From contig NIVC01003111.1 in NCBI GenBank assembly GCA_002269645.1, positions 1 through 64,000 of the forward strand: a stretch of 64,000 nucleotides of DNA. Direction: 5' to 3'. The notes below the pieces were generated by a model. It did no database searches and had not been told where the DNA came from. It saw nothing but the letters and a program-made list of their open reading frames with translations. Position 1 is the first letter of the stretch, and each line of letters starts with the position of its first letter. Shown here one piece after another: positions 3,201 through 56,842 of this stretch. This stretch comes from Macrostomum lignano. Taxonomy: Eukaryota. Position numbers and translations under genes: made by a program.

Positions 3201-6200
3201 GCACAACCTGCTGTTCAAGCGAGCAGTGCTGGCCAGGTGCTCATCACGGACAAGTCGGTCGCGGTGCACAAAATGGTGGACGATGAAAGTCACGTGATGC
3301 GCCGGCTTATCGGCTCCAAGATGACAGACTCCGATGTGGAAAAGATGTGCTCCATTCTGTCTAAATTTAGCAGGTAAATTAATTATAAAACAGATTTATA
3401 AAACTAATACAAAGCTAGCTACGCATCCATGTTACAAAAGGCGTATAGCCTACTCGTAGTGATGACACTTCATGAAGCCCAACAATTATTCAGATAGCTG
3501 GGAAAACGTTATGAATTGACAAAGCGATCAATACACCACTTACTCGTACGAACTCATCAGGGTCTGCCACCTTGAAGAGGAGCCAGAAGAGAGGCACCCG
3601 ATGAACCAGGCGATTCTGTACAACCACGGACTTCTCAACGATATTTTCGATCTAGTGTCTCAGGACATCGACATCAACCTGCTGGTAATTCGGTCGAGCC
3701 GATTTAACTTACCGTATCGAATCATCAAAATTGAACTGCGATGCCGTGAAATGCTGTATTCCAAGGTTTTAAGAGTTCGTTCGGCCTAACGCAAATGAAC
3801 TAGAAATTTTCTTTAAAGACCATGTTACTCAGGACTAAATTTGAAACGGCCCCAACATACATATTCCCATAACTCAAGAACGTTGTTGTGGACAACGAGA
3901 CGAGATTAAATGTTCAGGTAAGAGCAAGTCTTTCCTATTGATTGCACCATTGACAACCAGAAGCCCGGAGATTTTTTCTCAACCCATCACGCACACGGTT
4001 TGTCTAACCAGGCTGGCTTTGCAAGGCCAGCCTGCCATGAGCTGTTCAGTCCATCGCACTTTTCTCAGCGTTTCATTGCACCAACCGGAAAAGTTTTTGT
4101 CTCAAATTACCTCTCAATCTTGAAACCAATGAATACATTGCCGTTTTGTCTCATTTTATTTGCCAAGCTGTCTTGCCAGTTCCATTTCCTAGACATAAAC
4201 TTCAAATACGTAGCGGTTCAAATTCTACCAAATCGTTAACACTTCTTTGCCACCCATTTGCTTCTTCAAGACCGCGCGCAATTCAAAAAAACAAAAGAAG
4301 AAAAAGGTATATTTTCCTCATTTGTAGATGAGCATCTGATGCACACAGAAAAAATTTGAAGCTGCTTCCTTGAGTTTTCGATTCACCACCTGCTTTATCG
4401 CACAGTACTACAGAGTACCTGTAGCCTGTTTTGTACAATGCTAAGGATAGAATGTTTCTTTACTGAAAATTACACCCAAAAACTGTACATGAAATGTTTT
4501 CGCACGGCACATTTGAAGTGCATTTAGTAGCTGTCTAAAAACATTACATGATAGCCAAATACGTAAAGAATTTCACTCGGATTTACTAATTGTCTAATTT
4601 TTTGTTGTTTAAATAACTGACGTTGTTGTGCTCACTTAACTCTACTTTTCCTACTCTTTCTTTAATAACTGAATTTTCGCAGTGCTACGTACAAAATGCT
4701 TAAGTTATTGCGAATTCGCTTCAGGACGAGTACAGCGGACTTCGCAAAGTGTTCGCCAAGTGCTTCAGTCTGCTGCGCCTCATGGCCAGAGGAAACGCGG
4801 TCGTACAAAACCACCTGTTCGATCGCCTGGACGCCCTGCTGAGCTGCGTTGGCGCCGAGTCCGAGCTGGCCCTGGCTCTCGCTGAGGTGTTCACTGGAAA
4901 CAAGAACACCTGCATGAAAGTTCTGCCGCATCACATTGCCAGAACTATGTCACTGATTGCTCAGCATGGGCCGAGAGCCCCAGAGTTCCTGGACATGCTC
5001 AACGCTCTGGTGAAGGTGGAGGAGCTGGACTTGCCGCTCAAGCGCAACCAGGCCTACGTGATGAAGTACTTCATGCAGCAGCGAACGGACGTGGCTGAGT
5101 GCCTGGACCAGGACAAAGAGGTCCAGCAGGGTCTGCTGCGATCGCCAACTCGCACGCCGGAGTCCGACTACATGATCGCTCTGGTCGACCTGCTGGCTAC
5201 CTGTGCTGAGGGCGAGAACCGCTTCATCGAGTCCATCAACCAGACCATCTACAAGGTGAGCGACGTGCTGGCGATTCTGACGGACCCCGCCATCCCGAAC
5301 CACAACAAGCGGCCATTCGCGCGCTTCCTGCTGTGGGTCTACCTCAACACGGCCGGCGGGATCATCGAGAGCGGAGCCGGAGACCTGCCGCACGACGCCA
5401 ACATGTGGCAGCTGTTCGGCATGGTGAGGGAGGACCTGAGGCGCATGGCGGAGCTCGCCGTGGAGAGCCCGCAGCTTGTTCGACAGCTGCTGAAGATTCG
5501 CGTCTTCAAGAAGTGAGTTTATCAGTTGTCACAGCTATAAAAAACGAACAGCAGACTGTCTCTTTGTTGCGGAGCACCAACTGTCTTCTGTCACTAGTAA
5601 GACAGATTCTAGAAAAAAACATTTCACTGTTGTGAATCCAATACGTATCAACTGCCTCCACCAGGACTTTCTCACTCAGAGACAGCCCAACACCCGAGAC
5701 CTTGACCGAATCGCTCATTCTCAGCTCTACTAGAGTGCACTAAGAAATTGCTCACGTAACCGGATCTAGCTTCGCAAAGACAATACAGTTTGATGCCATA
5801 TCGCGCTTTCTTGGATGGGATATATTGACGAAACATGACGCGACCCCTGAACAGAACAAGCTCTTCGTCGACACTAATTTCCTTTTCTGGCATGTATGCA
5901 CTGCGACAAATCTCAGCTACACGCGTAATAAATGGTCTTGCCTTTGCTAGCAAGTCGTTTCCATCGAAGTTGTTGCAGTCATAGAAGCGCAGCTGGCTAC
6001 TGATCTGTTGGTACCTGTCCCTTGTCAGGCAAGCGAGTTGTTGGAAGAAAGGTGTTGCGTAGAAATCATCTTTGCTCCAATAGTTGGCGATCTCGGGCTT
6101 TTTAACTATTCCCATGTAAAGCAACATGGCGACAAACTTTCTTCATCTCGTCCACGGTCACGTTTTTCCACGCAGAGAACCTTTGAGGCAGGTTTGGCAT

Positions 6201-9200
6201 CGATGCTTGTAGCTCGTCGAATTTGCGCCATTGGTCCAAGCGCAGAACTGTTGCAGCAGGTCAGCAGTCAGAAACAGCTTGAAAAACGCAGCTGGATCGT
6301 CATCAGCAGTCTCTGGCCTCGGCAAGTCAGGATCCACACCAGGCATTCCCCAGAACTCGGGGTCTGCATCTGGCCGTTGATCCTGCCCAGCTTCCCGTGC
6401 CACCCAAGCATCAGTTGACAAGTCTCCGACGTCTTCATTTGGCTGGAGATGCAGGTCCTCCTCCTCTTCATCTTTACCCTTGTCCGCTGTTAGCCAGCCT
6501 TCCTCCTCCTCTAGTTCGGAGTCGGTATCCGGATCAAAATGCATTTGAGCCGCAGCCATGACAAACACTGTCCGACACTTGGAAATTATTGCACAAAATA
6601 AAGTTGCTGATCGATGATTTAATTAATCAGCACTTGACTTTGATCATTTAGCTTCAAACTTTACCCACCCACCCGTCCATCCACCCCACTCCACTTTGTT
6701 TTTTGCTTTTATGTTTATCGTTTATTGCTACGAGTATAAGCTAATCCGCCGGCTATCGCTGGGTACGGGGGTGTAAAAATATTCTGTAATAGTCTATGGC
6801 CTGCTTGGGTTAACTTGAGCTGTTGTTCGTCCACGTCAGCAAGCGAGCTATCTGTTGTTATTTAGCACAGCGGCATTTATACCTGAGCAAGTTTGCTGTT
6901 CCAGTTCTGTCCACAGACACTGTTGCACTGCGTTGCAGGAAGCAGCCAAGTCTGCAAGTGATCGACTATGAGGCTCAGAACCCTGTGCCGGTGAAGATTC
7001 AAATGTAATGTAATATCCAAAAATTCATGCATCAATTTTGTTGCCAACGGCATGAGTGTATACAGAAATATCAATATTATTAGTCGTATAGCCGCGATTG
7101 CCATTCCTAATAACGGATCAAAAATCACAATCATAATTCCTTTTTCACGCATGCTTGTGCAAGTATTTATTACTAAATTATTACTCATTTTTCTCCCTAT
7201 GCGGGCTTACATTATTAGCCGCATCTGCTGACAATACCGCTTTCAGGCACAAGAGGCACTCCTCAAAGAGGAGGCGATCGCACAAGCACAGGCTGGAGTC
7301 GCTGCCCCAAGTGTAATATGAAAATCTGCTCCGCATGCGCTCTCCTCTGACCTTTGAGTGCCGTGGGGTGGTAGTTCCGCTTTCGGTTTTAATCTGCTTT
7401 AGATAGCTCGTCCCTGTCGCAAGCATCCCTGAGTTTGTCTCTTCTCTGCTAGCTTTAAGATACTCGTAGGACTTTTGGTTAATGCAGAGCAGTGAGATTC
7501 AGCTGACTCATGCTTTGCAGTTTTACCTTAACTTTTTTGTATTTTCATCGGAACTGAAGTCTCTGAGCCACTGAAATCTGAGCCACTTCGGGTTACTGAG
7601 CCCGTTTCCATTTTCGATTTTCCTGATCTAAGAATTAGTAGATATGTGTCAAATAGAAAAATGCACTTTTACTCATGCTAAAAAGTACATGATACCCTTT
7701 CTGTTTTATTGATGCTGTGCCTGCAAAATTTGATAATCAGAAAGTTAATAGGAGAACCGTCCCGTTGCAGCGAGATGGAAGACCCATCCAGCAAGGAGAA
7801 GCAGGACATGACAGACGAGGCTGCTCACGGCACCCTGAAATACCTGTTCGAGGGAGCCCTCCCCGTGGTCAATGTACGTACAGTAAAATTACGCGCACAG
7901 GTTGCCTTAAGATTGTTCAGTAAATAACCACTTGAAAATTCTCTTCTAGGCCTTTTTCAAGAGCATTTACATCAAGGACTTGGAGGATCACCCGAACGAA
8001 ATAGAAGAGATTAACAAACTCGCCAAGATTCTCATCGTAAGAGAAAAAGATGTCCTTTGATGGTAGAATCTGTTTTTTTACCCATGATACAAAAGATTCT
8101 GCTAATTTACTGGCCTGCTGTCCCGTTTACGCAGAACTTCATCGAAGCAGCAATGCCACTAATCTCGGAGGAAAAGTACGTAAAGTACCTGCTGAGCAGT
8201 GCAACCAGCCTGCTCACAGTTTGCACCCTGCCTGCTAAAGTGAGTAGCGCTGAAACTGGTTGTTTGAAAAAAAAAAGCAAAACATATTTCATACACAGTG
8301 TTGATTGTTTTTCAACAAACACCTACAGGACAGGCAAATTAGCAGTCTAAAGGTGAAACAAAAGGTTTGAATGGGACAGAAGTTACAATACTTTCTTGAA
8401 TCTTAGTTACCACGAACACTGATTCCTGGACAAATTAAATTAATAATTAAGCATTATAGCGCTACGGAAATTGCATTATTGATTATTGATATAAGTCCGA
8501 CCGAGCTTGTAATCTATGCTCTAAAAGACTCAGCTATCAAAAATGCTAATATTGATTTTTGGATAATACTTAAGATGAAAGGCGCCAATGTGCAGTAGTT
8601 TTCTCTGATTTATGACCGAAATTGTACCTCGTACAGTAAGACTTGTGCATTGTGCGCCTTCGTAATATAAAATTCACTTGATTCTGACATCTGACAAAGC
8701 GACAAAGCGAAAAAATGAAACTCATCAAACGATTCGATGAAATGCCTTTTGAATTTCCGAATGGCTTCTAAAACATTAATGGCCTTTCCTTTCTCCGATC
8801 AAACTCTGACAGGCTATTGAAGAATTTCGCGGAAAATACGGAGGAGGCGTCCAAATCAACTGGGACGTCAGAAGCGAGGCTCGAAAGGTGCTTAAGGAAA
8901 CAGATTGTATTTTTGAAAAGGCATTATGAACAGAAAATTTGAGAAAAAAATATTTAATCTAATAAACTTCAGCGATACGAAGAGTACTACTCATCCGAGG
9001 AGGAGCTGAACGTGCAGCTAAACGTGTTTGCAACCAACTACAGCATCTCTTACGGAGGCGAGAACACCGTCAAAGACCAGATCGGCTTTCCCAGCGACCA
9101 GGGTTCGTTTAAGAAGTTGATGCGCTTCTTGAAGACAGAAGTATTTAACCTAGGCGTTTTTACCCTTAGTCATTTTCCTTTAGTTTTCTACCTGCCATCC

Positions 9201-12200
9201 CGCCCTTGTAGTGTTGCCGGAAGATTATAGTAGTACATTATACTCGATGAAAGTCTACCAGAATGTGGAAACATTTTTGATTCAATAAGTTCTTATCAAG
9301 TTTGCAAGTAAACCGATCAAATAAGCTAGGAATATATGATGGACTCTTTTAATTCCTAGTGCAATGCTTCACGCTATGACAGTTCGAAATCCAAACTCCA
9401 AAACCAATCCAAACCACGCCAGAATACACTGGAATTGGCAGCGACGAAGAGCTCCCTCTCGGCAAGGAGTTCCAGGACCACGCGGCCTGCTTCATCGATG
9501 CCAATCGGCCGATCTCGGACCCACAAAAGTACAAACTTACTGGGAAGCTCGTGGAACAGCTTTTGTGAGTAAAAGATATGCTTTGTTTTGAGCTTATATG
9601 CTTGACGCACGTGTCTACATATTGCCACTTGGAAATTGCCATCATTGACAGCATCTCCAACCAGATGGAGCTGAGCAATGAGAAGGAGCGCATTGAGCAG
9701 GAGATCCTTGACGTGAAGTGTCTTCAACTGCTGCGGGCCATCATACACAACGAGATTGTCAAGCTGCCGACCAACTTTGACACCGTCGACTTCAAAGAGT
9801 AAGTGCCTTTTTTGTCTGCTTTTTCTCTTCTGGGAGTCTCACATGAGCTTTAAATGTCGTTGCAAAAAATCGCCTTCCATGTTCACTTCTATCTGAGCCT
9901 ATTAGTGCACTGCACTGCATTAGCAAGCCGCTGGTCTTTCAGAATGGCTGGTCGAGGAAAGAAACTATATTACAGGTAAAGGTGCATTCGTACCGACAGT
10001 TATGTGGAATGCATCAACACTGGTAGCATTAAATGTGTCTTGAAGTTACTCTGGTAACCTTTTAAATACTATCTGATAAAAATTTTCTATTTAATGATTG
10101 TACGCTTGTAGAAGCGAAGCTTTATTATACATAATTATATATCGCGTGATTTTAATTAACACCGAAATGTGTTTTAAACATTTGTGGATTAATCATAATT
10201 CAGATAGCAGATGGCGATTAACGCATTTCAAGGCAGCAATCAAGGCATTCGAGCAGTTCAATTTTGTTCATCAATGAGTGGTCAGGGTCTTTTACCTGTA
10301 GTTCTGGTATGAAATTTACTCAAATTGACGACATGCTGACTGTGGTAAAAGGATTGTGCTGATTGTGGTAAAAGGCTGTCGTTGAAATTAAATACATTTT
10401 TCTGAGTCATTCTGGACTTATATTCTGGCTGCCATCTATTAACTCTGGAAAACACTTCCAGATCTGAACTTTGAGATTGGTCGTACCTTCCTTTTTTATT
10501 TGTCAGTTTGTTGATACTCAACATCTAATTGTGATTAAGTGGGCCGCCTTGATTCGTCGCTCACTAATGTTCGTTGAGCCTAATTTTGAAAATCGATTGC
10601 TGCGCAGTTAAATCGATAAAAATCGCGCTGACTTCCAGACGAATCGCAGCGATCGCTCAGGTGCAGATGGCGCTAAACAAGCACGACGCCATGCTGAAAG
10701 TGCTGCCGCACTTATCCAAGCAGTCGGACGAGATCGTGCGCGAGGTGCTCAGCTTCCTCGCCAACATGCTGTTCAACGGCAATGAAGAGGTCCAGGGCAG
10801 CCTGCTGGACTATTTCTACGGCACTCGCGAGGAGAAGTTCTTCGTGGCAGTGAAGAACCGGATCAGCATGTCCTCCATGGCCTGGAAAGAGAAGTGAGAG
10901 CAATGTATTTTGTTTTATCCCTCACCTCTACTTACCTTTATGATAGGTTCGAAGCACTATTCTGTTGAGCAATCCTTTAATCTCACAGCCGAGCCCTCAT
11001 CAATCAGCATCAAGCGAAAATCGAGGAAGCCATCGCTGAGCTGCGAGACCTTCAACAGGCAATGAAGGAGGGCCGGATCTCAGCAGAGGCGCTCCAGGGC
11101 AGCAAGATGGGCTCGATGCTGCTCAATCTGAAATCAAGCAAGGGCAGCATCACTGGCAGCGGGGCTCGAATGCGGGGCAGCCGGAGCTACGCACTTGGCA
11201 GCACTGCGGAAATGCGGCGGCGGCAGACTCGAAATCAAGGATCAACGGCTCAACTTCGAGCATCTCGCAGCAACCTGCATGACGTCGGCGGAGGCGGTAT
11301 TCGCAACCACGGTTTTACTGGCGATAGTCGAGGCCCAGGCTCCACGGACTCAACTCGTCAGCTGATCAGAGGTGACGCGACGGAGATGCAAAACATGGGC
11401 CAAGAGGCACCGAGCCACGCCACAGGCAACCGGGTGGCGCCAGCCGACGCGGCCACTTCAAACATTGACGAGGGTGACATTGAGGAACTGGCGACGCGGA
11501 TTGTAATGGAGGATGAGAATATGCAGATGAAGGACGACGGCTACATTGAGCTGGTGCTCCGCGTGCTCGCTTATGTATGCGACGGGCAGAACACTAAGCT
11601 GCAGGACTACCTGAGAGAGCAGCCGGACAACATCAAGTCTATCAACCTGGTGGCGGAGACTTCACGTTTCCTCGGTCTCACCTACACAGCCATCAACAAG
11701 TCAAGTATATCGCTAATAATTCAAATATTTGACTCGCTGGTCGAGTTTGCCTCTGGAAACCTCAGCAATCAGGCCGTGTGCTACGACAACAAGGTTTGTG
11801 ACTACATTAACTACTTGCTACGGTCTAAGCAATCCTATTCAAAGTGCGGTCTGCAAGAGGAAATGGATTTGAAGAGATCCATTGCGAACCTCATCGTGGC
11901 CATGATCGAAGAGAATGTTAAACGTGACGCTGAGCGCGACGCCTCTGAGCAGGCGGTTGTCGGCGCCGCGGGAATCTCGCATTTGGAGAAGAGGCTGAAA
12001 GCCATCGCGGGGGTTGCCGATGAAGTCAAAGACACAATCGATGCCGACAGCATTCTGAATGTCTTTGTCGACTGCTATAGGCGACATCTGGACGCCGCGC
12101 TGGACAGAGACACGCGGGAGTCGATTATAGCTGTGGGATTCAAGTACTTTCACATCTTCCTGCGTTTCCAAGATCTCGATCATATGAAGACCGTTAACTT

Positions 12201-15200
12201 CGAGGCAATGGTCGAGAAAGATGCTGACGCTGACGAGCAGCGACTCATCTGGGATTTCTACCAATCAAACACAATGTCCATTGAGATCCTTAAGGACAAT
12301 AATCTCCAGAAAGTCTACTTCCGCGTCAAAGATAAGAAGGTGCTGAGAGAGGAAGTGAAGGATCGCTTTAAGTACGATGTGGACAGGTAAAGTTTCCTAA
12401 GTTTTTAATCTAACTTCTCTTGACTTCTTAATAATGCGTCTTCCGAAGTATACTCGTAGAACTAAAAATAATCCCTAACAAGCTCTAATACTTGCCCCAA
12501 ACTGAGATTTCTGTCACCAACATGCCCCTAGAGAAGATATACGAATTCCTAGTCCTATTACGGAATAAGATTTTTGATGAACTCGCTATAATTTGACGGA
12601 GTTTCTTAACGGGAGAAAGACCCAACATAAGCGATCACAACTTTATTTAACTTAAACAGATCCTCTCCAACTAATAAGCTGCGCGACTTCTCCGACTGGC
12701 TTCGCGAGATCATCAAGGACATCAAGTGGCAGAAGCGAATCCTCAGCAACCCTCTCGGCTCCTTCTTCGTGCACGGCTGGAAGGCGTTTAACATCCTGTG
12801 CATCATCCTGAGCCTGGCTATCAGCATTGTGGTGCTGAGCAGCTGGGACACGCCTGAAAATATCACGGATCCTGTGCCAGTTCGAGCAGATGGAGCCGTT
12901 TATGCGACCTATGCTCTTGGAATCGTGCACAATATACTCAGCCTGTTCATTCTGATCAGTTTCTTCCTCAGCAATCATCCATATTTTCCGTCTATGCAAC
13001 AAATTCGTACCTTTTGGTCGTAAGTTACCGCTATAAGCGTGCATTATTTAAAAAATTCCCAGCCTTGTGTCTGAAGAAACAAAAGTTATATTTAAATAAG
13101 TTTCTGCTCTATCAATCGAATTCGCTTTCATATTGATTAACCTGCACTGGAATCACCACACTCAGTATACGGGTTTTCTCTGGGGGTTTATTGTTTGGTA
13201 TTCTCACTTTCTATAATATAGGTCTAGCGGCCTAAGGTTCTTACAGCTCTTTCTTCTATCAGACCGTCAGAGAAAATCGTATAAACTGACGGGATCTCCT
13301 AGTATCTAGGCTGAATTTGAATCTCACGAGTATTTCGCTCTGCGTAACTTTTAAGGCAAATAATTGTTTTTAAGTCTTGGATTTGAGCCAGTTGAGATCT
13401 GAAAACTGCGTCAGGAAGAAGCGCCGCTCCAGTTTGAGATGGGCGTCTATTTTATACAGATTGGCATTTTTTACCTATCCCGCCGCCGGTGGGGTGTCTT
13501 CGCGTGGTTAGCAACGGCGGGGGGTTTAAACAATAAAAATCTGGGACTCAGTCCCCTAGTTGTACACGAATTTAGTTAGTTCTAGTAGGTTGCTAAGTGT
13601 GTGGGTTAGAGATTATTCGGGGTTTTGCAAATCCATGCGTTGAGTTGGATAAATTTTGGGATAGAAAGATCACAGAAAAAGAGCTTAGTCTAAGAGAGCT
13701 CTCTTAACTCTGTCCATAGATGATCACACAGTCCTCTCTCTCTCTCTCTCTCGGTTGTCAAACTACTTGGGGTTGATCTCGACTTCTTGGGCAGCTTCGG
13801 GTTGGATAGAAGTCCGTGGGCGGGCCGTGCGACTCTCCTCTGAAGTTTGCCAGGTTCTGACGCGTGCCACTGGCCGATTGCTCTTTTTGACGTCATCCTA
13901 AGTCGGGCCTCTCCTCGGTTTGCTTCTCCCAGCCGGTTTGAGCGCCATTGTGCCTGCGGCGGGGTGTTGCTACTCACTGGAATGGAAAGAGGCTTTATTA
14001 GATTCGGTCATTCATATCTGAATTGACTTTTGTTGCTGCTTTTGTTCGCCTTCTAATAGCTATCTAGGGGGTTCCATTGTGCTCTTCTGCCTCGCCCTTC
14101 ACTGCGCCTGGGCATTTCATACTTTTCTACCTATCTTCTAACGTAGGGTAAAACTTCAGATTTCTAACTCTTTTACTCAGGAAGCTGATCGGAATTGGCT
14201 CCAAGACGGCCACAGAAGACGAGGACAACGCCGAAGGGAAGCTTCAAGCCTCCGTGTTCAGCTTTAGCACGTTTTACTACATCGCCTTCCTGCTGATGTC
14301 AGTGCTGGGTACCGTCTTCTATGGCTACTTCTTTGCCTTCCATCTGCTGCACATTGCCAACCACAACCAGCTGCTGGCTAGGGTTATCCAGGCTGTTACC
14401 AAGAACGGTAAGGATATATTTGCTTCAGATTCGTGAACGGATATTATGGTAGACTCATAAATTTCTATCAGCTTGAAGAGCGGTGGATTGCTGACAACTA
14501 GTACTCTAAATAATACTTGTACTGGCATTGCAGGCTTATCACTATTATGGGTACTCATCTACTCCTTGGCTTTCTTCTACATCTACGCGCTGCTCAGTTT
14601 CGCTTTCTACCGAGAAATTTATGACTCCTCAACTGGCAACTTCTGTGAGACCATGTACCAGTGCACAGTCACCGTGATCCACAGGGGCCTCATCGCCGGA
14701 ATCTACGACGTAAGCATTGGTTAAGAACTCGAAATTCTTGTTTGATGCTCTTTGTTTGCCTGTAAATTTTCACCTGTGAATAATTAAATAAAGTAAAAAA
14801 CCCGTCTGAACTTTATCCCAGGAGGGCGATGTAAGTAATCGATGAATGTTTCCAGCTACTTCCTTGATATCGGTGTTGTCTACCTTAGTCAATTTCCTAT
14901 TGTAACCAATAATTCGTACCGGTTTGCCACCTTAATAGTCCGTAACTTCCTACTCTGAGTCTAATGCTACTGCGCACGACACTTAAGTTTGAACTGTTTA
15001 TTATTTGTGCATTTTGCATGCAGCACTGACGTGTGAGGCCCCTAGTCACTATCGACTAAAGCTACCAAATGTGTAATGCTTCGAAATAGCAACCATCATG
15101 ATAATTTAAATCGTAAAAGTCGAATGGCGAAACCGTTTCAGTATCTACCGGTTCCCGAAAACAGACCTTTCAATTATCACCTGGCAAAATCGGTATTCGA

Positions 15201-16511
15201 CATCTCCTTCTTCATCATTATCACCACCATCGGACTGAACATCATCTTCGGCATCATCGTGGACACCTTCAGCGAGCTGAGAGACTCCAAATGGCAGATC
15301 GACCAGGACATGACATCCGTGTGCTTCATCTGCTCCAGGAATGCCTACGATTTTGAGCATCATGGAGAAGTGAGTCACTGTTTTGACTGGCTCCGGATCA
15401 CGGCTTTACAAAAAAAAACAATTTTAAGTCTTGAGCACACAAGCTTTAGCTGCCCAGCTTTCTATAAAAATGAGCTCAACTTGCTTTTAGGGATTCGAGA
15501 AGCACGTGAAAGAAGAGCACAACCAGTGGGCCTACCTGTTCTTTATGCTCTACCTGGAGGAGACCCGAGAGAATGACTACACTGCCATTGAGCTCTATGT
15601 ATCTCGACTAGTGAGTTCGGCACATTTTATTGTTTACCAACTGAACAGTTTTCTGAAGCAAGGGAGAACTACGTTTGCTGTAACAGATTCCTAAATTTGA
15701 ACGGGCGTGTGATCTTCATAATCGTCAAAGATGAGGTTCATATAAACAAAACGTAAAATAACTCACTAACCCTCACCCTAATCTATTCTAGTACGAAAAA
15801 GAAAAGCTGGACTTCTTTCCGCTGAACAAGTCCATAACGCTGGAGGCGGCCGAGGACAACCAAGAAGAGCTGAAGCTCGAGACACTGATGACACAGGTCT
15901 CATTTCTGGTGCACAAGTGGAAAGAAGAAGTGAGTCTGCAGTTAGTCATCATGCTAGTACGAGATGTGTTTACGTTCATATTCAAGCCCAGTTATTCTTA
16001 GAGAAAACGTAGACTTCTTAGGATGTCATTTGACTTCCAGAAATTCGACTGCCAAAAGGGTATGGGTAGGGTTAGGGCTAGGGTTAGGGTTAGGGTTAGG
16101 GTTAGGGTTAGGGTTAGGGTTAGGGTTAGGGTTAGGTCGGTATGTCCGATGTCATAGGTCGGAAATTCTATGAAACCTGTAACGAAACGAACGGGTGCCG
16201 AAAATCCGGCACTTCATTTGACGGTAACAAACTATGCTGCTCTATGCTACTTATAGTGAGTAGCACACTCCGAAGCTTATTCTGTTATTCTGACGCACGG
16301 CTCATCCCGCTCTTCCCAACAGGATCTGGCAAAGGAGCGCGAAAAAGAGAAGAAGCGCCAGCAGCAGTGGGAGGAGCAGCACAAAAGAAACGGCGGAGGC
16401 AACGGAGGCGGCGCTAGCAGCGGCAGCGGCAGAGGAGGCGGCAGCGGCGGCGTGATTATCCGGCCAAGAGCTGCCGAAGAAAGTCAGCAACTGGACGTCC
16501 CATTTGATTAA
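222..16511 (+). CDS. ITPR: IP3 receptor-like Ca2+ release channel, gene 1 (spliced; exons 13-39, N-terminal part upstream of window)
   Basis: Exons inferred by GT-AG boundaries and homology to genes 2/3: 222-290, 1286-1525, 1664-1911, 2496-2595, 2669-2833, 2926-3013, 3130-3373, 3561-3684, 4725-5512, 6939-7004 (plus alternative 7247-7312), 7771-7873, 7950-8036, 8135-8239, 8813-8887, 8973-9102, 9423-9564, 9652-9798, 9943-9975, 10639-10893, 10989-12386, 12660-13019, 14181-14407, 14534-14709, 15142-15369, 15491-15610, 15792-15929, 16323-16511 (TAA). Motifs: RIH-associated domain ([23 protein letters not shown]), 6 TM helices, S6 [16 protein letters not shown], zinc finger CFIC...H..EEHN.W.Y. Six -1 deletions before position 3240. 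Confidence 0.9.
298..1256. repeat. (GGGATCGGGATCA)n satellite filling gene 1 intron 13
   Basis: ~960 bp of 6/7-bp GGGATC/AGGGATC units between donor gtaagac (291) and acceptor attag (1285). Confidence 0.97.
4725..5512 (+). CDS. gene 1 exon 21 (central armadillo/RIH solenoid)
   Basis: 788-nt exon, ttcag|GAC...AA|gtgagt; ORF 4749..5516; same length as 26492-25705 and 45008-44221. Confidence 0.9.
5530..6813 (-). mobile_element. decayed, one-ended piggyBac DNA transposon in gene 1 intron 21
   Basis: Terminal TTAA-CCC on the minus strand (GGG TTAA at 6807-6813); transposase fragments in ORFs 6158..6568 (acidic N-terminus, P..FF.LF.T..L...TN motif) and 5672..6127 ([30 protein letters not shown]); no matching left end. 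Confidence 0.85.
5672..6559 (-). pseudogene. piggyBac (PGBD-like) transposase, frameshifted and 3'-truncated
   Basis: ATG at 6559; frameshift near 6230 joins WTN to RKFDEL...[17 protein letters not shown]; only the first catalytic Asp (SVDE) is intact. Confidence 0.8.
6939..7004 (+). CDS. gene 1 exon 22a (hypervariable, [23 protein letters not shown])
   Basis: gttgcag|G...CAA AT|gtaatg, 66 nt, phase 2-2; ends like gene 2 exon 22 (CCT CAA AT|gtagg). Confidence 0.7.
7247..7312 (+). CDS. gene 1 candidate alternative exon 22b ([23 protein letters not shown])
   Basis: gctttcag|G...CTG CCC CAA GT|gtaata, 66 nt, phase 2-2, open frame, LPQ ending matches gene 2 exon 22 (ETLPQ). Confidence 0.6.
9943..9975 (+). 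CDS. gene 1 33-nt micro-exon 30
   Basis: ctttcag|A ATG GCT...TAC AG|gtaaag; same length and phase as 23603-23571 and 42503-42471. Confidence 0.7.
10989..12386 (+). CDS. gene 1 exon 32 (disordered linker plus RIH-associated domain)
   Basis: ORF 11062..12390; [50 protein letters not shown]. Confidence 0.9.
12660..13019 (+). CDS. gene 1 exon 33 (S1-S2 transmembrane)
   Basis: [10 protein letters not shown]...[21 protein letters not shown]; aaacag| and |gtaagt boundaries. Confidence 0.88.
14181..14709 (+). CDS. gene 1 exons 34-35 (S3-S5, pore helix, filter; intron 14408-14533)
   Basis: [47 protein letters not shown]. Confidence 0.88.
15142..15369 (+). CDS. gene 1 exon 36 (S6 gate and zinc finger start)
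   Basis: [29 protein letters not shown]...CFICS. Confidence 0.92.
16062..16136 (+). repeat. interstitial telomeric repeat (TTAGGG)n in last intron of gene 1
   Basis: 8 consecutive perfect TTAGGG at 16084-16131, with TTAGGG, CTAGGG and degenerate units flanking. Confidence 0.95.
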
Positions 16512-17817: not shown

Positions 17818-20800
17818 TCATTTGAAGGCTGCCTCGAGCATCGCGCTTCCCGCATCCGGTTTCCGCTTCCCGGCGGTTGGCCTGCGCGGCGCCTGACGTC
17901 CGTCGGCTGCGGAGCTGTCGCAGCTGTTCCTGTGCTGCTCCTCCCACTTCTGCTGGCGTAGTCGTTCGCGCTCGCGCTCTTTCGACAGCTCCTGAAATGT
18001 CGGTTAAGGAACGTTTATGTTTTTTATTATTAGAGGCGGGGGGTTGTGTGCACACTGGCGCACTTTAAGCGACATAGGCACACAACCGGCGAGAGGCATT
18101 GCTGCCCATTCCGCCGACTCCCCTGAGCAGGCATACAAGCGCGCGGATACGTACGCAGGCACACACTCACACAGGAGTGTACAGCGGCCCTAACTTTATT
18201 TTATCGTTAGGCATGTACACTTCACTGCGCCTTGGGGGGTTGGCTCTCAAGGCCGTTAATTGCACGAGCAGAGCCAAGCCGAGATTCCAATTCAGCCCCA
18301 AATTAATGTGACTGCACTTGGAATCGAGCCTGGGTCGCTGGCACACCAGAGCCTGCACTAGACCGCTGGGCGTTCATGTTTATGACCTTTATGAATTCCC
18401 ATCTCCAATTGAATTTGAAGCTCTCGAATAACACCCAGACTAACGAGCTAGACGCCAGATAAGCTCATTCTCATCCTAAGTGCTAAAAATTGTATCTTGG
18501 TAGGCATGCTCAGCGGATTTTCGCCAAATTTGCGTCACTAGATCGATCAGTCCTAAACTCCCCCTTCGTCTCTTTCATGATTATCCAAAGCAAATTACCT
18601 CCTCCTTCCACTTGCGGACGAGAAATGAGACCTGGCTGAGCAGAGTCTCCAGCTTCGCCTCTTCCCTGTTGTCCTCAGCTGCCTCCAGCGTCATCGACTT
18701 GTTCAACGGAAAGTAGTCAAATCGCTCTTTGTCGAACTGAAGTTGGAATTTTTTTAGATGACGTTTTGCTAATATTGGCACCTTCCCAGCACTCAAAGCT
18801 CAAGACAGTCCCTCGTGGTCATTTACGAGCACATAGTCATGCTTACAGTCATTACTAAATGTACAGCAGAGATGACTAACATCCGCACTGTATAGCTTAA
18901 AAAATTCTTTCAGTTAACTTCATTATATACGCGTACCTATGAAGTTTTTTCAATTCCAGGTAAACTCACCTGCCTCCATACGAAAAGTTCAATGGCAGTA
19001 TAGTCGTTAAACCGTGTCTCATCCAGGTGTAGAATGAAGAACAGGTAGGCCCACTGGTTGTGCTCTTCTTTTACGTGCTTCTCGAAACCCTAAAGGGTCG
19101 ATTGGTGTATTTAATTAAACACTACTGACTCTGTCTCTTACAGTCTTTCCCTGGCAATTTTTAGAAAATATAAGAAGGAATAGTTCAGATGAGTCATCAG
19201 CATAAACCAATGGCGTTGAGCCATTTCTTAGGCACAAGCAATAAAGCTCGACTCACTTCTCCATGGTGCTCGAAATCGTAGGCATTCCTGGAGCAGATGA
19301 AGCACACGGATGTCATGTCCTGGTCGATCTGCCATTTGGAGTCTCTCAGCTCGCTGAAGGTGTCCACGATGATGCCGAAGATGATGTTCAGTCCGATGGT
19401 GGTGATAATGATGAAGAAGGAGATGTCGAAGATGCCTTTCACCAAATGGTATGCAAACGGCGTACCACTCGGAACCGGAAGGTACTGGAAAATTTACGGT
19501 CACAGATGGAATTTTGAGCAGGAAGAAATTAATCATGATTAACCAAAGAAAATATCTGCTGACTTGAACCAACAGGGCCTACAGAAATAGGGACAGTAAG
19601 TAAAGCGTTGCTACTAAAGAAAATAATTTGGTGCAGAAAGTCACGAAAGCAGCCATTAAAGTAAACTAAATATTCAGACAAATGAACAGCACCGCCAATG
19701 TACGCATCATAACATAAAAGGAAAATTTGTTTCTATCGAAAAAACATTTAAAACAAAAAGGACTGTGTGCTGTGTGCAGAGTGGACAGTAACATGTGCTA
19801 CGAGCAGTATAGCGATTCGGTAGAAGCTACTCACATTTTCCTATATTATGATGAATGCCGATACCAAAGAAAAAGCGGATTGTTTTTATTGCTTCAATAC
19901 CCAAATTAAGTCTGCTGCTTGATTATTAAACTAAGAAGGCTGGTACGAGCACCATAAATTTTACTCACATCGTAGATTCCAGCAATGAGACCCCGGTGGA
20001 TGACGGTCACCGTGCACTGGTACATTGTCTCGCAGAAGTTGCCTGTGGTACTGTCATAAAGGCCTCGATAGAAGGCGAAGCTGAGCAGGGCATAGATAAA
20101 GAAGAACGCCAAGGAGTAGATGAGCACCCACAGTAGAGACAGGCCTGGAGAGAAGGGATCATGTACAATGGAACATCATGGAAATGCTGTATATTAGGTG
20201 CATAGCTTGCATTGACAATCGGACTGGGCGCTCACCGTTCTTCGTCACCGCCTGGATGACTCGAGAAAGCAGCTGATTGTGTCTTGCAATGTGCAGCAGG
20301 TGGAACGCAAAGAAATAGCCGTAGAAGATGGTGCCGAGAATTGAGAAGGCCAGGAAAATGATGTAGTAAAAGGTGGAAAAGCTGAACACGGACGCTTGGA
20401 GTTTCCCGCCAGCTTCTTCCTCGCCTTCTTCAGCGTCCTTTGGAGCGACGCCAACCAGCTGTCTAAGGTTTCAAGGGATAAAGGGATATAAATCCTTTGA
20501 TTTGAGCTAAAACTCCTGTTCAGGTTTCCTCTTTAATTTTCAGGTACAGGCACAGTTAAAGGCTACAGGTATAGGAAAAAATACTTGAAACATTAAAAAA
20601 CTGCTAACCTGCTAATGCTCTTTTTCAAATGTTTTATTATACTACACTTATATGCACCGCGAGAGATAACTAAAAACAGCACATGCGTGGTTGAGCATTA
20701 GGATTTTTATAGATTAGGACTGACTTACTTCCAGAAATTTCCGATCTGTCTCGGGCTTGGCACATACGGGTTGTTGCAAAGAAAGAAGCTAATCAGCACG

Positions 20801-23800
20801 AACAAGCTCAGAATGTTGTGCAAAATACCAAGCACGTAAGTCGCGTACATAGCAGCGTCCGTGCGAACTGGCACGGGGTTGTTCACACTGTCTGGTTTGG
20901 TCCAGTCGACTAAAATCACAATGCTGATGGTCAGGCTCAGGATGATGCATAGGATGTTGAAGGCCTTCCAGCCATGCACGAAGAAGGAGCCGAGCGGGTT
21001 ACTGAGTACCCGCTTCTGCCACTTGATGTCCTTGATGATCTCGCGCAACCAGTCGGAGAAGTCACGCAGCTTGTTGGTTGGAGACGTTCTGAAAAATATT
21101 TTTTAAAAATATTAGCGGACGATGGACTGGTGGTGTTGCTGTATGCACCTATACGAGATAACCCTAAGACACAAGAGTCTGTTAAAGCTTGTAATAAAAC
21201 TAAAAAGTAGGGATTCTATGCTCCACATAGTACGGCTTGCAGACCTTTTCTCGCTTTTACAGGCATCCCTGATCCAAGTACACATGCATGCAAATAGGAG
21301 CGCTTAGTCACACGGAAGTAGATAATCTGTGGCTTTCCGGGAACCCTGACTATTTCTTTTGAGGCAGTCGAATCTGGCACCTCCTACGTAAGCTTATTTG
21401 CTAACAAGACAATACACTCGCATTCCCTACCTATCGACTTCGTACTTAAAACGCTCTTTCACATCCTCTCGCAAAACATTCTGATCCTTTACTCGGAAGT
21501 AGACTTTCTGCAGGGTTTCGTCCTTAAGCACTTCGATTGACATTGTGTTTGACTGATAGAAGTCCCAGATGAGTCGCATCTCTTCTGCGTCTGCGTCCTT
21601 CTCAATCATTCTCTCAAAGTCAAAGTTCGACTGCTTGTCCAGATCCCGAAATCGGAGGAAAATATGGAAGTACTTGAATCCTACCGTGATGATCATCTCT
21701 TGAGACTCCTTGCTCAAAGCTTCATCGAGATGTCGTCGGTAGCAGTCAATGAAAACATTGCGGATGCTCTCTGCATCCATTGTGTCCTTCACTTCATCTG
21801 CCACACCAACCAATACCTTAATTTGCCTCTCCGCTAGACTCGTGCCGATGCCGGCTCCACCCAAAAGCTCTGCAGGATCATTATCCTGATGCTTGACATT
21901 CTCTTCGATCATTGCAAAAATAAGATTTGCGATGGATCTCTTCATGCTCATCTCATCCAATAGGCCGAACTTGGCATATGACTGCTTCGAACGCAACAGG
22001 TAGTTCATGTAGTCGCACACCTTGTTGTCGAAACACACGGCCTGGTTACTGAGATTGCCTGAGGCGAATTCCACAAGAGTATCGAATATTTGAATGATTA
22101 AAGAGATGTTGGACTTGTTGATTGAAGTGTAGGTCAGGCCGAGGAAGCGTGACGTCTCGGCTACCAGGTTGATCGACTTGATATTGTCCGGTTGCTCTCT
22201 CAGGTAGTCTTGCAGCCGTGTGTTCTGTCCGTCGCATATGTAAGCGAGCACTCGAAGCACCAGCTCGATGTAGCCTTCGTCCTTCATTTGTAGATTCTCG
22301 TTCTCCATGACTACTCTCATAGCCAGCTCTTCGATGTCGGCGTCGTCAACGGCTGAAGGGGGTCCCACGTTGCTAGGCTGCACTGGAGCGACGCGGTTCT
22401 CGGGCAGCAAGCCGACGGCCTGGCCGTTGCCCAGCCTGTCCTTTGATCCTCCGGCTGCAGCAGCAGACTGGGTGCTTGTCTGTCCGTGCAGACTAGCTTG
22501 CGAGCCTCGGATCTGCGACATCGAGCCTTCTGCGCGCTGAAGCCGGCGTCGCAGCTCGGCTGTGCTGCCCCTCATCCGGGACGCGCTGCCTCTCAAGCTT
22601 GACCTGCTGGCCTGCATGCTCATCAGCATTGAGCCGAGCTTGTTGCCTTGCATGGCTTCAGCGGAGACGCGGCCCTCCTTGATCGCCTGTTGAAGGTCGC
22701 GCATTTCGGCAATGGCCTCCTCGATCTTTGCTTGATGCTGGCTGATGAGTGCTCGGCTGACAGACAAAAAGGATACAAATTGATTTTTGGAAGCATCATG
22801 AATAATAAAAGGGTAGTAGAAATCTTTGAGGAGAATAAAAAAACATTTCAAGTGTGAAATGTCGAGTAAAAATTACTTTAATTAGGATTTACTATTAAGT
22901 CATTTATCAATAAGACAGTACTTACTTCTCCTTCCAAGCCATTGACGACAAGGTCATCCGTTCCTTCACAGCCAGAAAAAACTTTTCTTCCCGGGTGTTG
23001 TAGAAATATTCAATCAAACTTTCCTGAACCTCTTCGTTTCCATTGTACAGCATGTTGGCAAGGAATCCGAGCACTTCGCGAACTATCTCGTCGGACGCTT
23101 TTGACAAGTGCGGCAGCACTTTCAGCATGGCATCGTGCTTGTTGAGCGAATTCTGCACTTGCGAGATGACCTCGATAAGCCTAGATGAGAATGCAGAGGT
23201 TGGGGTCAACTGATTGTGTTCAAAGCAGATCGAAATTCGATGTTTCAAAAAACCGACATGGCGTTTTGAATGTGTTGATGATTAGGAATCCAAGCATTAG
23301 TGAATACGATTATAACTGTGTCGTTATGAAGCAGCACAAGGCAGCACATAACACACAAACGCATACACAACATACTATGTACAGCCGCCGAAACAAAACT
23401 GGAAGCGGTTCATCACACTATTTAATAAAGTAAAGTATCACAAAATCACTTCGATTGTTTCAGAATATTTTGCACTTGGTGTTAGCCGTAACTGTAAGCT
23501 TTATACTCTTATAGTACAAGACGCAAGCAAACTGACGTAGATCAGTCTAACAAAGTCTCGCAATGTTTACCTGGATAGATCACTTTGTCTTACTCGACTC
23601 AGTCTGAAATTGTGACAGTATTCAAACTAGCTGGCTGTTGCGTTCCTAGCGTTTGTCCATAGAAGCTTCAGTAAGTCGTTATATTCATTTTATAACATTT
23701 TTGGTCTGCAAACCTTGTATACATCCCAAAGCACTTACTCCTTAGTGTCCGTGTTTTCAAAGTCATCCGGAAGCTTGACAATTTCGTTGTGCAGAATGGC

Positions 23801-26800
23801 TCTGAGCAATTTCAAGCATTTCACGTCGAGAATTTCCTGTTCGATTCGCTCCTTTTCGTTGGTGAGCTCCATTTGACTTGAAATGCTGATGATGGGTGTA
23901 GAAATTTAGCTCGTGTTAAATTCATATTACTCTCGTACACACTATTTTAGGTGATTTCATTTGATTTGCAATGAGACTCAACTTCTGCTGAATAGCACTG
24001 TCCTAAATCTTTACTACGAGCGTATTTTGGTCTTCTGCTATACTTTGCGAGAGCACCTGCATGCAAGGCTTACAAACTGTCACATCGTGTCTGAACATCG
24101 CTAGTTTTGCCCACAATTACTCGGTTGAATCGGTATCGACTGACCGGATATCCATTCGATTACATCAGGACTAAAAGAACAAACATATACTATAATGAGA
24201 AGCTGTACTCACTGCAGCTGTTCCACTAGCTTCCCCGCCAGCTGGAACTTGAGCGGATCCGATACAGGCCTATCAGCATCGATGAAGCAGTTCACGTGGT
24301 TCTGGAATTCTTTGCCAAGCGGTAGCTCTTCATCGCTGCCAATCTCGGTGTATTCTAAAGTGCGCGAAGGGTTTCTAATAAATATTCATCCACCATACAC
24401 TGGCAAGAAACCAACAGATTGAGGATGTGAAATCGACTTCAAGTACTTGCCGAAATCGCTGGGAAAGCCGATTTGCGCCCGCAGCGTGTTTTCACCGCCG
24501 TAGGCAATGCTGTAGTTCAATGCGAATACATTCAGCTGGGCGTTTAGCTCTTCCTCCGTGCTGTAGTACTCTTCGTACCGCTGGAATTTCGTTTTTGATA
24601 TTTTTTCATAAGACGTTGCGACGTATTTTATAAGGAAATCAACCAGCGAACCTTTCTGCCTTCAGTTCGAGCGTCCCAGTTGAGTTGAATTCCAGATCCG
24701 TACTTATTCTGAAATTCCTCGATGGCCTAAAAGCATTTGAAGAATAGTGAATTTCAGAATCGTCTCAGCAATTCAAATACTTGTTTCAATAGATGAAAAT
24801 TGAAGTCTAAATCTTACTTTGGCCGGAAGGGTGCTGACGGTTAACAGACAAGTGGTGCAGCCCACAAGTGCCTTAGAGTACTTTTCATCAGACAGCAAGG
24901 GCATAGCGGCATTCACGAAGGTCTAAAGAATCAAATAAAAAAACCATAAAATTAATACTTTATGGTTTAAATCTAAAACCTTGTAAAAATTTTCATGCAT
25001 GCATCTTACCATCAAGACCTGGACGAGTTTGTTAATCTCATCGATCTCTTTTGGATATTCTTCCAAATCTTTCAAGAAAATGTTTTTGAAGAAAGCCTAA
25101 AATTTTATTTTGTAAAAAACCTTGTTTAAAACCTTTGCTCGAAAGGTAATGTACGGCGAGTATTACTAAAAGAGTTTTGGCCTACATTCAGGATGGGCAG
25201 AGCTCCTTCAAAAATATACTTCAGTGTGCCGTGAACAGTTTCGTCCGGGATCTTCCTTTTGCTACTTGATGAGTCATCAATCGTTCTGGAATTTCGTTTG
25301 ATTACAAGAAGTCAATCAACCAACCAGACTAAACGAATTCATGTCCACTGTGAATTTCTCCTATTGATCAAAATAGAAACGTCTTTTAAGAAGTATTTCC
25401 AACAAATTTGCCTAGAAACGTTGAGGCGAACCTACATTTGAGGCAGAGTCTCCATGCTCATTCGCTCGTCTGCCAATTTCGCAGAGGCACCCTGCTGTCT
25501 GAAAGTCAATCAAAGTGACTAACAGTGATTCTCTCAGTCATCTGTTTCTTTCGCGGCTGCTTGAATGGGATCGCTACGATTAAACTAAAGAATGGCTATT
25601 GGACCTATGAACCACTTTAATTTCGACGATACATAGTCACTGAGTAAAAAAACTTTTGAGGCAGAAAATGTTTATACAATTTTTAAGTAAGACGATACAC
25701 TCACTTCTTCAGGACGCGAACCTTCAGCAGCTGTCGAACAAGCTGCGGGCTCTCCACGGCGAGCTCCGCCATGCGACTCAGGTCCTCCCTCACCATGCCG
25801 AACAGCTGCCACATGTTGGCGTCGTGCGGCAGGTCTCCGGCTCCGCTCTCGATGAGCCCGCCGGCCGTGTTGAGGTAGACCCACAGCAGGAAGCGCGCGA
25901 ATGGCCGCTTGTTGTGGTTCGGGATGGCGGGGTCCGTCAGAATCGCCAGCACGTCGCTCACCTTGTAGATGGTCTGGTTGATGGACTCGATGAAGCGGTT
26001 CTCGCCCTCAGCACAGGTAGCCAGCAGGTCGACCAGAGCGATCATGTAGTCGGACTCCGGCGATTGGGAGGCTGAACGGAGCAGCTTAAATTGAGCTTCC
26101 TTCGGTTGATCGAGGCACTGAGCCACATCGGCTCGATGCTGCATGAAGTACTTCATCACGTAGGCCTGGTTGCGCTTGAGCGGCAAGTCCAGCTCCTCCA
26201 CCTTCACCAGAGCGTTGAGCATGTCCAGGAACTCTGGGGCTTTCGACCCATGCTGCGCCACGAGAGCCATTGCTCTGGCGATTTGGTGCGGCAGAACTTT
26301 CATGCAGGTGTTCTTGTTTCCAGTGAACACCTCAGCGAGAGCCAGGGCCAGCTCGGACTCGGCGCCAACGCAGCTCAGCAGGGCGTCCAGGCGATCGAAC
26401 AGGTGGTTTTGTACGACCGCGTTTCCTCTGGCCATGAGGCGCAGCAGACTGAAGCACTTGGCGAACACTTTGCGAAGTCCGCTGTACTCGTCCTAATATG
26501 AAGTCACGTAAATTTTGAGAAATAGTGTTAAATATTAGCCCATTACCTACAAAGAAAGTTCATACGAGCTAAGTACCAAATTAATGAAAATTAATAAAAC
26601 GACTGAGCGAGTTCTATAAGATGCGAGGGCTCCAACACCATCCCAATTTATGGGTGAGAAAGGACGGCACGTGGAAACAACAATTTCATCTCTAACGAGC
26701 ACACAGTAAAACTTACTAATTTTTCTTGCATTGTTACTTTTGGATAGAAGAACGTTTGTAACGTCTTGTTAGTGCAGATTCATCGCACTTATACGAGTAA

Positions 26801-56332: not shown

Positions 56333-56842
56333 GAGGAATTACCGAGATGTCAAGGCTGACGGGAGGAATTGCTGAGATGTCAAGGCTGACGGGAGGAATT
56401 GCCGAGATGTCAAGGCTTACGGGGGGAATTGCCGAGAGGTCAGGGCTGACGGGGGGAATTGTCGAGATGTCAAGGCTGACGGGAGGAATTGCTGAGATGT
56501 CAAGGCTGACGGGAGGAATTACCGAGATGTCAAGGCTGACGGGAGGAATTGCCGAGATGTCAAGGCTGATAGGGGGGAATTGTCGAGATGTCAAGGCTGA
56601 CGGGGGAATTGCCGAGATGTCAAGGCTGACGGGAGGAATTACCGAGATGTCAAGGCTGACGGGGGAATTGCCGAGAGGTCGAGGCTTACGGGAGGAATTG
56701 CCGAGATGTCAAGGCTTACGGGGGAATTGCCGAGATGTCAAGGCTGACGGGAGGAATTGCCGAGATGTCAAGGCTTACGGGAGGAATTGCCGAGATGTCA
56801 AGGCTTACGGGAGGAATTGCGAGAGGTCAAGGCTGAGAGGTC
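56333..56842. repeat. 30-bp minisatellite, ~17 copies (GCCGAGATGTCAAGGCTGACGGGAGGAATT)
   Basis: units directly visible from 56341, with a few length variants. Confidence 0.95.

Follow-up and report, generated by a model that had tools for sequence, protein, structure and literature searches.

Textbooks recognize two kinds of Ca2+-release channel, the IP3 receptors (IP3R) and the ryanodine receptors (RyR), and the selectivity filter GGGxGD is regarded as invariant in both. Comparative work indicates that the bilaterian ancestor carried three genes of this superfamily, namely IP3RA, IP3RB and RyR (PMC7992859). Vertebrates have lost IP3RB, Drosophila and C. elegans lack it, and carriers include Lottia, Capitella, Helobdella and Saccoglossus; in the leech, ip3rb2 shows strong and specific expression in touch neurons (PMC7992859). 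Here we describe a 64,000-nucleotide stretch of DNA from the flatworm Macrostomum lignano (contig NIVC01003111.1, positions 1 to 64,000 of the forward strand), called the window throughout, in which a self-comparison reveals three paralogous IP3R-like genes with the filter motif GLIAGIYD. The explanation that we favor, with a probability of roughly 0.6, is that the window holds three paralogs of IP3RB, here written IP3R-B, each carrying the short filter that is typical of that family, and that their products are channels whose permeation differs from that of IP3R-A and RyR.

The described IP3R-B family is like the window genes in its size of about 2600 amino acids, in its IP3R-type domain order, and in its taxonomic range, which takes in Saccoglossus, limpets, Capitella, other spiralians and a Capsaspora paralog other than IP3RA, and excludes vertebrates. 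Its sequences are also about equally far in score from IP3R-A and RyR. The genome examined here differs from that description in having at least three clustered copies with apparent gene-conversion tracts.

Canonical IP3R proteins (ITPR1-3, Drosophila Itpr and C. elegans itr-1) share with the window genes the Ins145_P3_rec, MIR, RIH, RIH_assoc and Ion_trans domains, the pore helix, the S6 sequence NxIFGxIxDTF with its Phe, the C2H2 zinc finger, the Ca2+-sensor Glu/Asp pair, and the pocket residues K508, R511, R568, K569 and R265 (IP3R1 numbering). However, their filter reads GLR[SN]GGGVGD rather than GLIAGIYD, their luminal loop between S5 and the pore helix has 60-100 residues rather than about 10, and they form a clade separate from the window genes, in which T266, T267, G268, R269 and Y567 are replaced. 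Ryanodine receptors have a short S5-P loop in common with the window genes, and RyR1 ranks first in a Foldseek comparison with a template modeling (TM) score of about 0.64. The HGFE-type motif that follows the zinc finger is also as in RyR1. In contrast to ryanodine receptors, the window proteins are about half the length (2665 against about 5000 amino acids) and have neither SPRY or RyR repeats nor GGGIGDE. Thus, the genes are new members of a known, almost unstudied family and carry its usual filter, and for this genome alone they are ordinary.

A short filter in three paralogous genes

In a six-frame translation of the whole window, GLIAGIYD occurs exactly three times, at 14686-14709 on the plus strand (gene 1) and at 19992-19969 and 38299-38276 on the minus strand (genes 2 and 3). 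An earlier note, prepared from the sequence alone, had reported the motif in all three paralogs, and the three exact copies bear this out. Its positions for genes 2 and 3 were also right, although it did not state that both genes lie on the minus strand. The pore helix and filter of gene 1 together occupy 23 codons (14641-14709, plus strand), and the donor gtaagc follows directly; by six-frame translation, the matching stretches are found at 19969-20037 in gene 2 and 38276-38344 in gene 3, both on the minus strand.

These stretches close an exon that begins with the end of S5 and that in gene 1 spans 176 nucleotides (14534..14709, plus strand, phase 1 to 0). This exon had been counted as the 35th, whereas it is exon 33 of 37 in the present models, as are the filter exons of gene 2 (19969..20144, minus strand) and gene 3 (38276..38451, minus strand). 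In gene 1, the next exon (15142..15369, plus strand) is entered in phase 0 through the acceptor tttcag and runs from S6 by way of CFIC to FEHHGE. Its counterparts with S6 and the zinc finger lie at 19257..19484 in gene 2 and at 37331..37558 in gene 3, on the minus strand and with conserved splice sites.

When aligned with the human IP3R3 filter by HMMER, the motif takes a two-residue gap (GLI--AGIYD), and MAFFT places the same gap one position later (GLIA--GIYD). Both alignments agree that Arg is replaced by Ile, that the Gly before the Asp is replaced by Tyr, and that the Asp itself is retained, so the description of the motif as two residues shorter than GGGxGD with these two exchanges was accurate. 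The GGGxGD/E filter of the IP3R/RyR superfamily is therefore absent from the window genes. The S6 gate Phe and the zinc finger, C-x2-C...H-x4-H (beginning CFIC), had been described as intact, and alignment to IP3R3 agrees; all zinc-finger Cys and His residues and E1946 are kept, and E1882 is Asp.

The motif lies next to an intron, and the earlier note had named a micro-exon at this junction that restores GGGxGD as a finding that would overturn its claim. No such exon was found. The filter exon is joined to the S6 exon as GIYD|YLPVP (GAC|gt) in phase 0, with GT/AG sites conserved in all three genes. In the HMMER alignment of gene 2 with human IP3R3, the distance from the Asp to S6 is within one residue of that in IP3R3, and the two-residue gap is the only length difference in the filter. 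The six-frame translation of the window contains no GGxGD, and a search of the introns on either side of the three filter exons, and of the sequence close to them, gave no coding-strand match to GGxG[DE], GxGGx[DE], GGG[ILVM] or [GAS]GG[ILVM]G. Matches to canonical filter patterns elsewhere in the six-frame translation were set aside as irrelevant, being on the wrong strand or in other exons. A homology-weighted splice solver offered an alternative join at the junction, which we rejected for its poor splice score of -3.4 and the tendency of the solver to favor skipping divergent segments.

A 7.1-kb public contig of a relative (L001, Logan contig SRR23372216_82910) provides an independent view of the junction. 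Its filter stretch, GFITGIYDFLGVPEERTF, lies within a single uninterrupted exon that lacks the four introns surrounding the filter in the window genes, and the same exon reads CALTVLHHGFITGIYDFLGVPEERTFNSYIYKVLLD, with GIYDFLGVPE at the junction. We considered whether this contig could be a transcript and rejected the idea; its open reading frame (ORF) ends exactly at the position of the FEHHG intron, as expected for genomic DNA. Given the in-phase join, the canonical spacing to S6 and this single-exon relative, a micro-exon that restores GGGxGD is very unlikely.

The filter motif and the pore exon are under strong purifying selection. Across the 23 pore-helix and filter codons, genes 1 and 2 have 10 synonymous differences (4 of them within GLIAGIYD) and 0 nonsynonymous differences, and gene 3 adds a single Phe-to-Tyr change at the first residue of the stretch. 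The ratio of nonsynonymous to synonymous divergence (dN/dS) in the filter exon is 0.032 for genes 1 and 2, at a synonymous divergence (dS) of 1.59, and 0.046 for genes 1 and 3, at a dS of 1.36. Over all exons of equal length, dN/dS is 0.154 for genes 1 and 2 (dS 0.92), 0.135 for genes 1 and 3 (dS 0.84), and 0.131 for genes 2 and 3 (dS 0.28).

An identical motif in three genes thus speaks for purifying selection over a long divergence rather than for recent copying or error. Nor is the repetition of the motif a product of chance, because the copies are paralogous exons whose differences between genes 1 and 2 are exclusively synonymous. Identity across three genes had already been put forward as an argument against sequencing error, and the agreement at the protein level, combined with synonymous-only differences between genes 1 and 2, sustains that argument and extends it to annotation error.

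Elsewhere in the genes, the divergence among paralogs is uneven. Between genes 2 and 3, dS varies from exon to exon over a range from 0.02 to more than 1, with values of 0.02-0.1 next to values above 1. The S6 exons of genes 1 and 2 are 98.9% identical in DNA (15196-15376 versus 19430-19250), and the adjoining filter exons are 82% identical. This mosaic points to gene-conversion tracts outside of the filter exon.

Assignment to the IP3R-B family by elimination

Relatives were collected with a word-indexed search and with an exhaustive HMMER search using the channel domain, and 4880 were found. The best 150 of these 4880 all score at least 148 bits, and the IP3R and RyR channel domains in PDB score 107-135 bits in a separate search; a PDB sequence search with the window protein returned only IP3R and RyR matches. 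The best protein identities, 52-64%, are to annelid, mollusc and flatworm proteins. The nearest named relatives come from molluscs (Patella caerulea, Sinanodonta, Pomacea, Dreissena, Elysia and Crassostrea) and annelids (Paralvinella, Ridgeia and Capitella), from other spiralians (the nemertean Tubulanus, the flatworm Macrostomum and the orthonectid Intoshia), and from deuterostomes (the acorn worm Saccoglossus and the amphioxus Branchiostoma).

GGGxGD is absent from all of these relatives. The filter reads GLSDGMYN in Patella, CFVGGPYT in Sinanodonta, GLIGDLLD in Tubulanus, GLIISLFE in Paralvinella, GLLESFHE in Saccoglossus and GLMENLHK in Branchiostoma, with GLIGGIYS and GLIGDLFD in Macrostomum and GFITGIYD in the single-exon contig. 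The consensus of 26 clade representatives, G-L-[IV]-[GE]-[DGS]-[LMIP]-[FY]-[ED], is two residues shorter than GGGxGD and has no glycine triplet. An acidic residue is present at the filter mouth in 18 of the 26, and the pore helix, C-x-T-x-x-[EQ]-C-x-V-T, and S6 are almost invariant among them. A comparison of the motif across invertebrate proteins, as the earlier note had proposed, thus yields a short, glycine-poor filter in every sampled metazoan member of the clade, and for this reason the filter must predate this genome by hundreds of millions of years. GLIAGIYD is very probably the filter typical of IP3R-B.

A neighbor-joining tree with bootstrap was built from the region between S5 and the C terminus (150 sequences, 265 columns). 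The metazoan clade without GGG has 94% bootstrap support. The three window genes are monophyletic (100%), genes 2 and 3 form a pair (100%), and the three fall into a subclade of spiralians that also takes in molluscs, Capitella and other annelids (89%); support for an annelid-like subclade is 18%. Human IP3R2 and IP3R3 branch outside the whole set of the 150 best relatives, and the window genes do not group with ITPR1-3. The Capsaspora protein XP_004347257.1, which has the same domain architecture as the window genes and the filter GLENGLAS without GGG, adjoins the metazoan clade, yet the joint clade has a bootstrap value of only 3%. This protein is distinct from Capsaspora IP3RA, which has the accession XP_004347577.1 (PMC9522344). 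Most choanoflagellate relatives retain GGGLGE.

We assign the window genes to IP3R-B because they are neither IP3R-A nor RyR and because they group with taxa that are reported to carry IP3RB. By elimination, they are members of the third bilaterian branch beside IP3R-A and RyR, and their motif is a conserved trait of that family rather than a local oddity. The earlier note had framed the genes as IP3R in which the filter is replaced. Their place in the IP3R/RyR superfamily stands, but they are not canonical IP3R genes that have lost a filter, since they belong to a separate, old clade.

In the literature searched, which did not cover the original description of IP3R-B, we found no mention of a clade-wide loss of GGGxGD in this family. 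An ancient third branch, present in most invertebrate phyla, that lacks GGGxGD and has a conserved replacement would imply either that permeation in the superfamily is broader than has been assumed or that a whole branch no longer consists of Ca2+-release channels. The window offers a clean example of IP3R-B with complete intron-exon models.

Predicted working of the pore and ligand pocket

The transmembrane and C-terminal part was modeled with AlphaFold2 (mean predicted local distance difference test score, pLDDT, of 80.5), and the model includes the pore helix at residues 236-249 and S6 at residues 264-313 in query numbering. Between these helices, the chain passes through two linking residues (A-G), a short helix made up of I-Y-D-Y, and a loop. 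Foldseek matches the model to the transmembrane domains of RyR1, RyR2 and IP3R1/IP3R3 with TM scores of about 0.6.

From these features, the proteins would be expected to assemble as tetrameric P-loop channels of internal membranes. At the luminal mouth, four Tyr or Phe side chains would lie next to four Asp or Glu carboxylates, and this arrangement would replace the glycine-carbonyl funnel. Conductance and Ca2+ selectivity would probably differ from those of IP3R-A and RyR, and gating would depend at least on cytosolic Ca2+, whereas a response to IP3 is uncertain. The Asp of GGGxGD is credited with concentrating cations in the filter, and V to I and E to Q exchanges alter IP3R/RyR conductance (PMC2995152). 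Since these exchanges and changes of the glycines alter canonical pores, permeation through IP3R-B is expected to differ as well, in a direction that is not predictable from sequence. We consider the chances about even that the pore conducts with altered permeation. The earlier note had proposed altered selectivity or conductance, or else a non-conducting subunit, and we regard this proposal as reasonable.

The putative ligand pocket also departs from that of canonical receptors. The full IP3-coordinating set of IP3R-A (R265, T266, T267, G268, R269, R504, K508, R511, Y567, R568 and K569) is not present in the window genes. Five of these residues, R265, K508, R511, R568 and K569, are unchanged, and R504 is Lys. 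The others are replaced, with Val at T266, Arg at T267, Ala at G268, Pro or Lys (by alignment) at R269, and Cys at Y567. At about residues 270-290 of gene 2 (exon 33553-32771), VHLRVR-x5-PKT stands in place of the IP3-contact loop FLRTTGR. The Patella and Saccoglossus relatives share the pattern HLR[VI]R-x5-P[KR]T, and slight variants of it occur in a MetaClust relative, in Capsaspora and in choanoflagellates. This recurrence indicates a pocket that has been remodeled, is conserved, and is still basic, and the pattern may mark a different anionic ligand.

Somewhat more tentatively, the metazoan IP3R-B clade could be functionally a third kind of intracellular channel, one that has permeation properties of its own and a ligand pocket (HLR[VI]R-x5-P[KR]T) unlike the IP3 site. 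Such a channel might provide a monovalent or low-conductance cation path, or it might serve as a Ca2+-gated sensor that does not conduct.

Several observations weigh against our explanation. The tree is distance-based (neighbor joining on 265 columns) and its RyR1 outgroup sequence was entered by hand, and the label IP3R-B was given by elimination and by taxa, without a labeled reference sequence. The AlphaFold2 model is a monomer and yields no pore radius. In a 2015 study by Alzayady and colleagues, Capsaspora IP3R-B reportedly showed neither IP3 binding nor Ca2+ release. Each of the three genes has at least one frame-breaking single-nucleotide deletion, so genes 1 and 3, and perhaps also gene 2, may not be functional today. 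In addition, single changes of Gly to Ser, Ala or Arg in GGGXG produce dead IP3R1 and IP3R2 pores (PMC7939385), and a pore without these glycines might therefore fail to conduct.

The last point leads to the strongest of the competing explanations, in which IP3R-B has kept the channel fold but acts without conducting, as a Ca2+ or ligand sensor, a scaffold, or a modulator of other channels. The glycines whose single substitution kills the IP3R1 and IP3R2 pores are indeed missing from the alignment (PMC7939385), and a bulky Tyr or Phe occupies the place of the last Gly. The lack of IP3-evoked Ca2+ release reported for Capsaspora IP3R-B also favors this view. However, conservation within the clade is highest in the pore helix and in S6, which lines the pore, and both are almost invariant in the 26 representatives. 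The pore exon has a dN/dS of 0.03, and the acidic residue at the mouth in 18 of 26 representatives completes a pattern of conservation that is expected if ions pass. Moreover, a missing IP3 response in one protist protein does not equal missing conduction. We therefore regard a non-conducting IP3R-B as unlikely, though it is the alternative that we take most seriously.

Even the filters of IP3R and RyR are wide and show little selectivity, and the short filter might for this reason be functionally neutral. An Asp ring and a wide vestibule would then be enough to maintain a pore of large conductance and weak Ca2+ selectivity, as in IP3R-A or RyR. The cation-concentrating Asp (PMC2995152) is kept in the window genes, and the position is acidic in most of the clade. 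However, the loop is two residues shorter and has an aromatic side chain at the mouth, and even conservative V to I or E to Q changes shift IP3R/RyR conductance (PMC2995152), which makes neutrality less likely still than a pore that does not conduct.

Gene structures, lesions and neighboring features

Gene models were built by chaining conserved reading-frame blocks and then demanding identical GT/AG sites in all paralogs. Genes 1 and 2 are arranged tail to tail, and genes 2 and 3 are in tandem. Gene 1 (222..16496, plus strand) is cut at its 5' end by the start of the window, and exons 13-37 of 37 are present. Gene 2 (17818..34315, minus strand) is complete, with 37 exons and a coding sequence of 7998 nucleotides for 2665 amino acids. 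Gene 3 (36033..54534, minus strand) has a complete span with 37 exons and every splice site conserved.

Intron positions and phases are all common to the three genes, the median intron has 160-215 nucleotides, and all 36 pairs of splice sites (36/36) are conserved among the paralogs. Gene 2 has one GC-AG intron, whose donor lies at 24451/24450 (exon 24580-24451, ATTTCG|gcaagt) and is GT in genes 1 and 3. Across the 5' third, the resemblance between genes 2 and 3 is close enough for conservation to extend into the introns. In Pfam, the gene 2 model matches Ins145_P3_rec, MIR, RIH (twice), RIH_assoc and Ion_trans, all five families scoring above their curated cut-offs, and no SPRY or RyR-repeat domain was found in its 2665 residues.

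Lesions, which the earlier note had not mentioned, were called by comparing the three paralogs with one another. In gene 1 (plus strand), exon 222-290 has three single-nucleotide deletions (near 263, 280 and 288) and an in-frame TAG at 267, exon 1664-1911 has two (near 1687 and 1906), and exon 3130-3373 has one (CCC to CC near 3233). In the gene 2 exon that starts at 27487 on the minus strand, CC has become C at about 27478, nine bases past an acceptor that is conserved in genes 1 and 3. To remain open, the frame of gene 2 needs a weaker, non-conserved AG downstream (exon 27401-27464), at a cost of eight codons. Exon 51093-51170 of gene 3 (minus strand) has a single-nucleotide deletion near 51109, and a TGA at 51110-51108 replaces a conserved Trp codon. 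All lesions (8/8) remove a single base; there are no insertions or longer indels, and none of the lesions is in a pore exon. Gene 1 reads open from 3561 onward, and none of the three genes is damaged in its pore, S6 or C-terminal exons.

The eight deletions reflect either recent pseudogenization or long-read assembly errors. Should all three copies be pseudogenes in decay, the motif would no longer serve any function in this genome. This explanation draws on the at least six single-nucleotide deletions and the in-frame TAG spread over three exons of gene 1, the deletion and the TGA at a conserved Trp in gene 3, and the deletion at a conserved acceptor in gene 2. Against it stand dN/dS values of 0.13-0.15 for the genes as a whole and 0.03-0.05 for the pore exon, at a dS near 1, the 36 conserved splice-site pairs, and the open frame of 2665 amino acids in gene 2. 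Lesions confined to single bases suit long-read assembly error at least as well as decay, and in combination with low dN/dS and intact splice sites they form the pattern expected of such errors. Furthermore, even if copies are dead, the motif represents the functional state of the family. We judge decay of all three genes to be improbable, slightly more so than a neutral filter.

Least credible by far is a gene-model artefact in which a missed micro-exon or alternative exon supplies GGGxGD: the motif ends exactly at an exon boundary, where an extra exon could hide, but the relevant introns hold no GGxG[DE] or GGG[ILVM] on the coding strand, the join is in phase with canonical S6 spacing, the relative without introns there reads GIYDFLGVPE, and many independent predicted proteins and short, almost fully coding, transcript-like contigs of relatives have the same kind of filter.

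Three IP3R-B paralogs with the family filter thus remain our preferred explanation, and two observations from other genomes concern the organization of such genes. In Dreissena polymorpha, several predicted IP3R-B-like proteins (P0079 and P0215-P0219) are encoded on one chromosome, and local expansion of IP3R-B is therefore not peculiar to the genome examined here. In the contig L001, a single exon (3932-5083) covers the region between the end of the big RIH_assoc exon and FEHHG, which four introns split in the window genes. Thus, intron density in the IP3R-B gene differs strongly between lineages.

Several repeats are associated with the three genes. Most of one intron of gene 1 is filled by a 13-nucleotide tandem repeat, GGGATCGGGATCA, at 298-1256 (about 75 copies, 96% match), and the last intron of the same gene holds a run of TAGGGT at 16067-16136 (about 12 copies), which is the telomere-type repeat (TTAGGG)n in permuted form. 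An inverted pair of 220-nucleotide elements, 87.5% identical, is located in the last intron of gene 2 (18138-18351) and the first intron of gene 3 (54150-53931), and this element is probably a dispersed repeat. Upstream of gene 3, a 30-nucleotide tandem repeat at 56333-56836 (about 17 copies) reads open in several frames, with no sign of coding.

A further single-exon ORF of 392 amino acids is present on the minus strand at 59267-60445. The predicted protein has a CBM_21 domain (Pfam E = 3.7e-29) and a KKAVRFAD stretch that resembles the RVxF motif, and it resembles a glycogen-targeting subunit of protein phosphatase 1. The ORF also includes a 51-nucleotide acidic repeat at 59961-60122.

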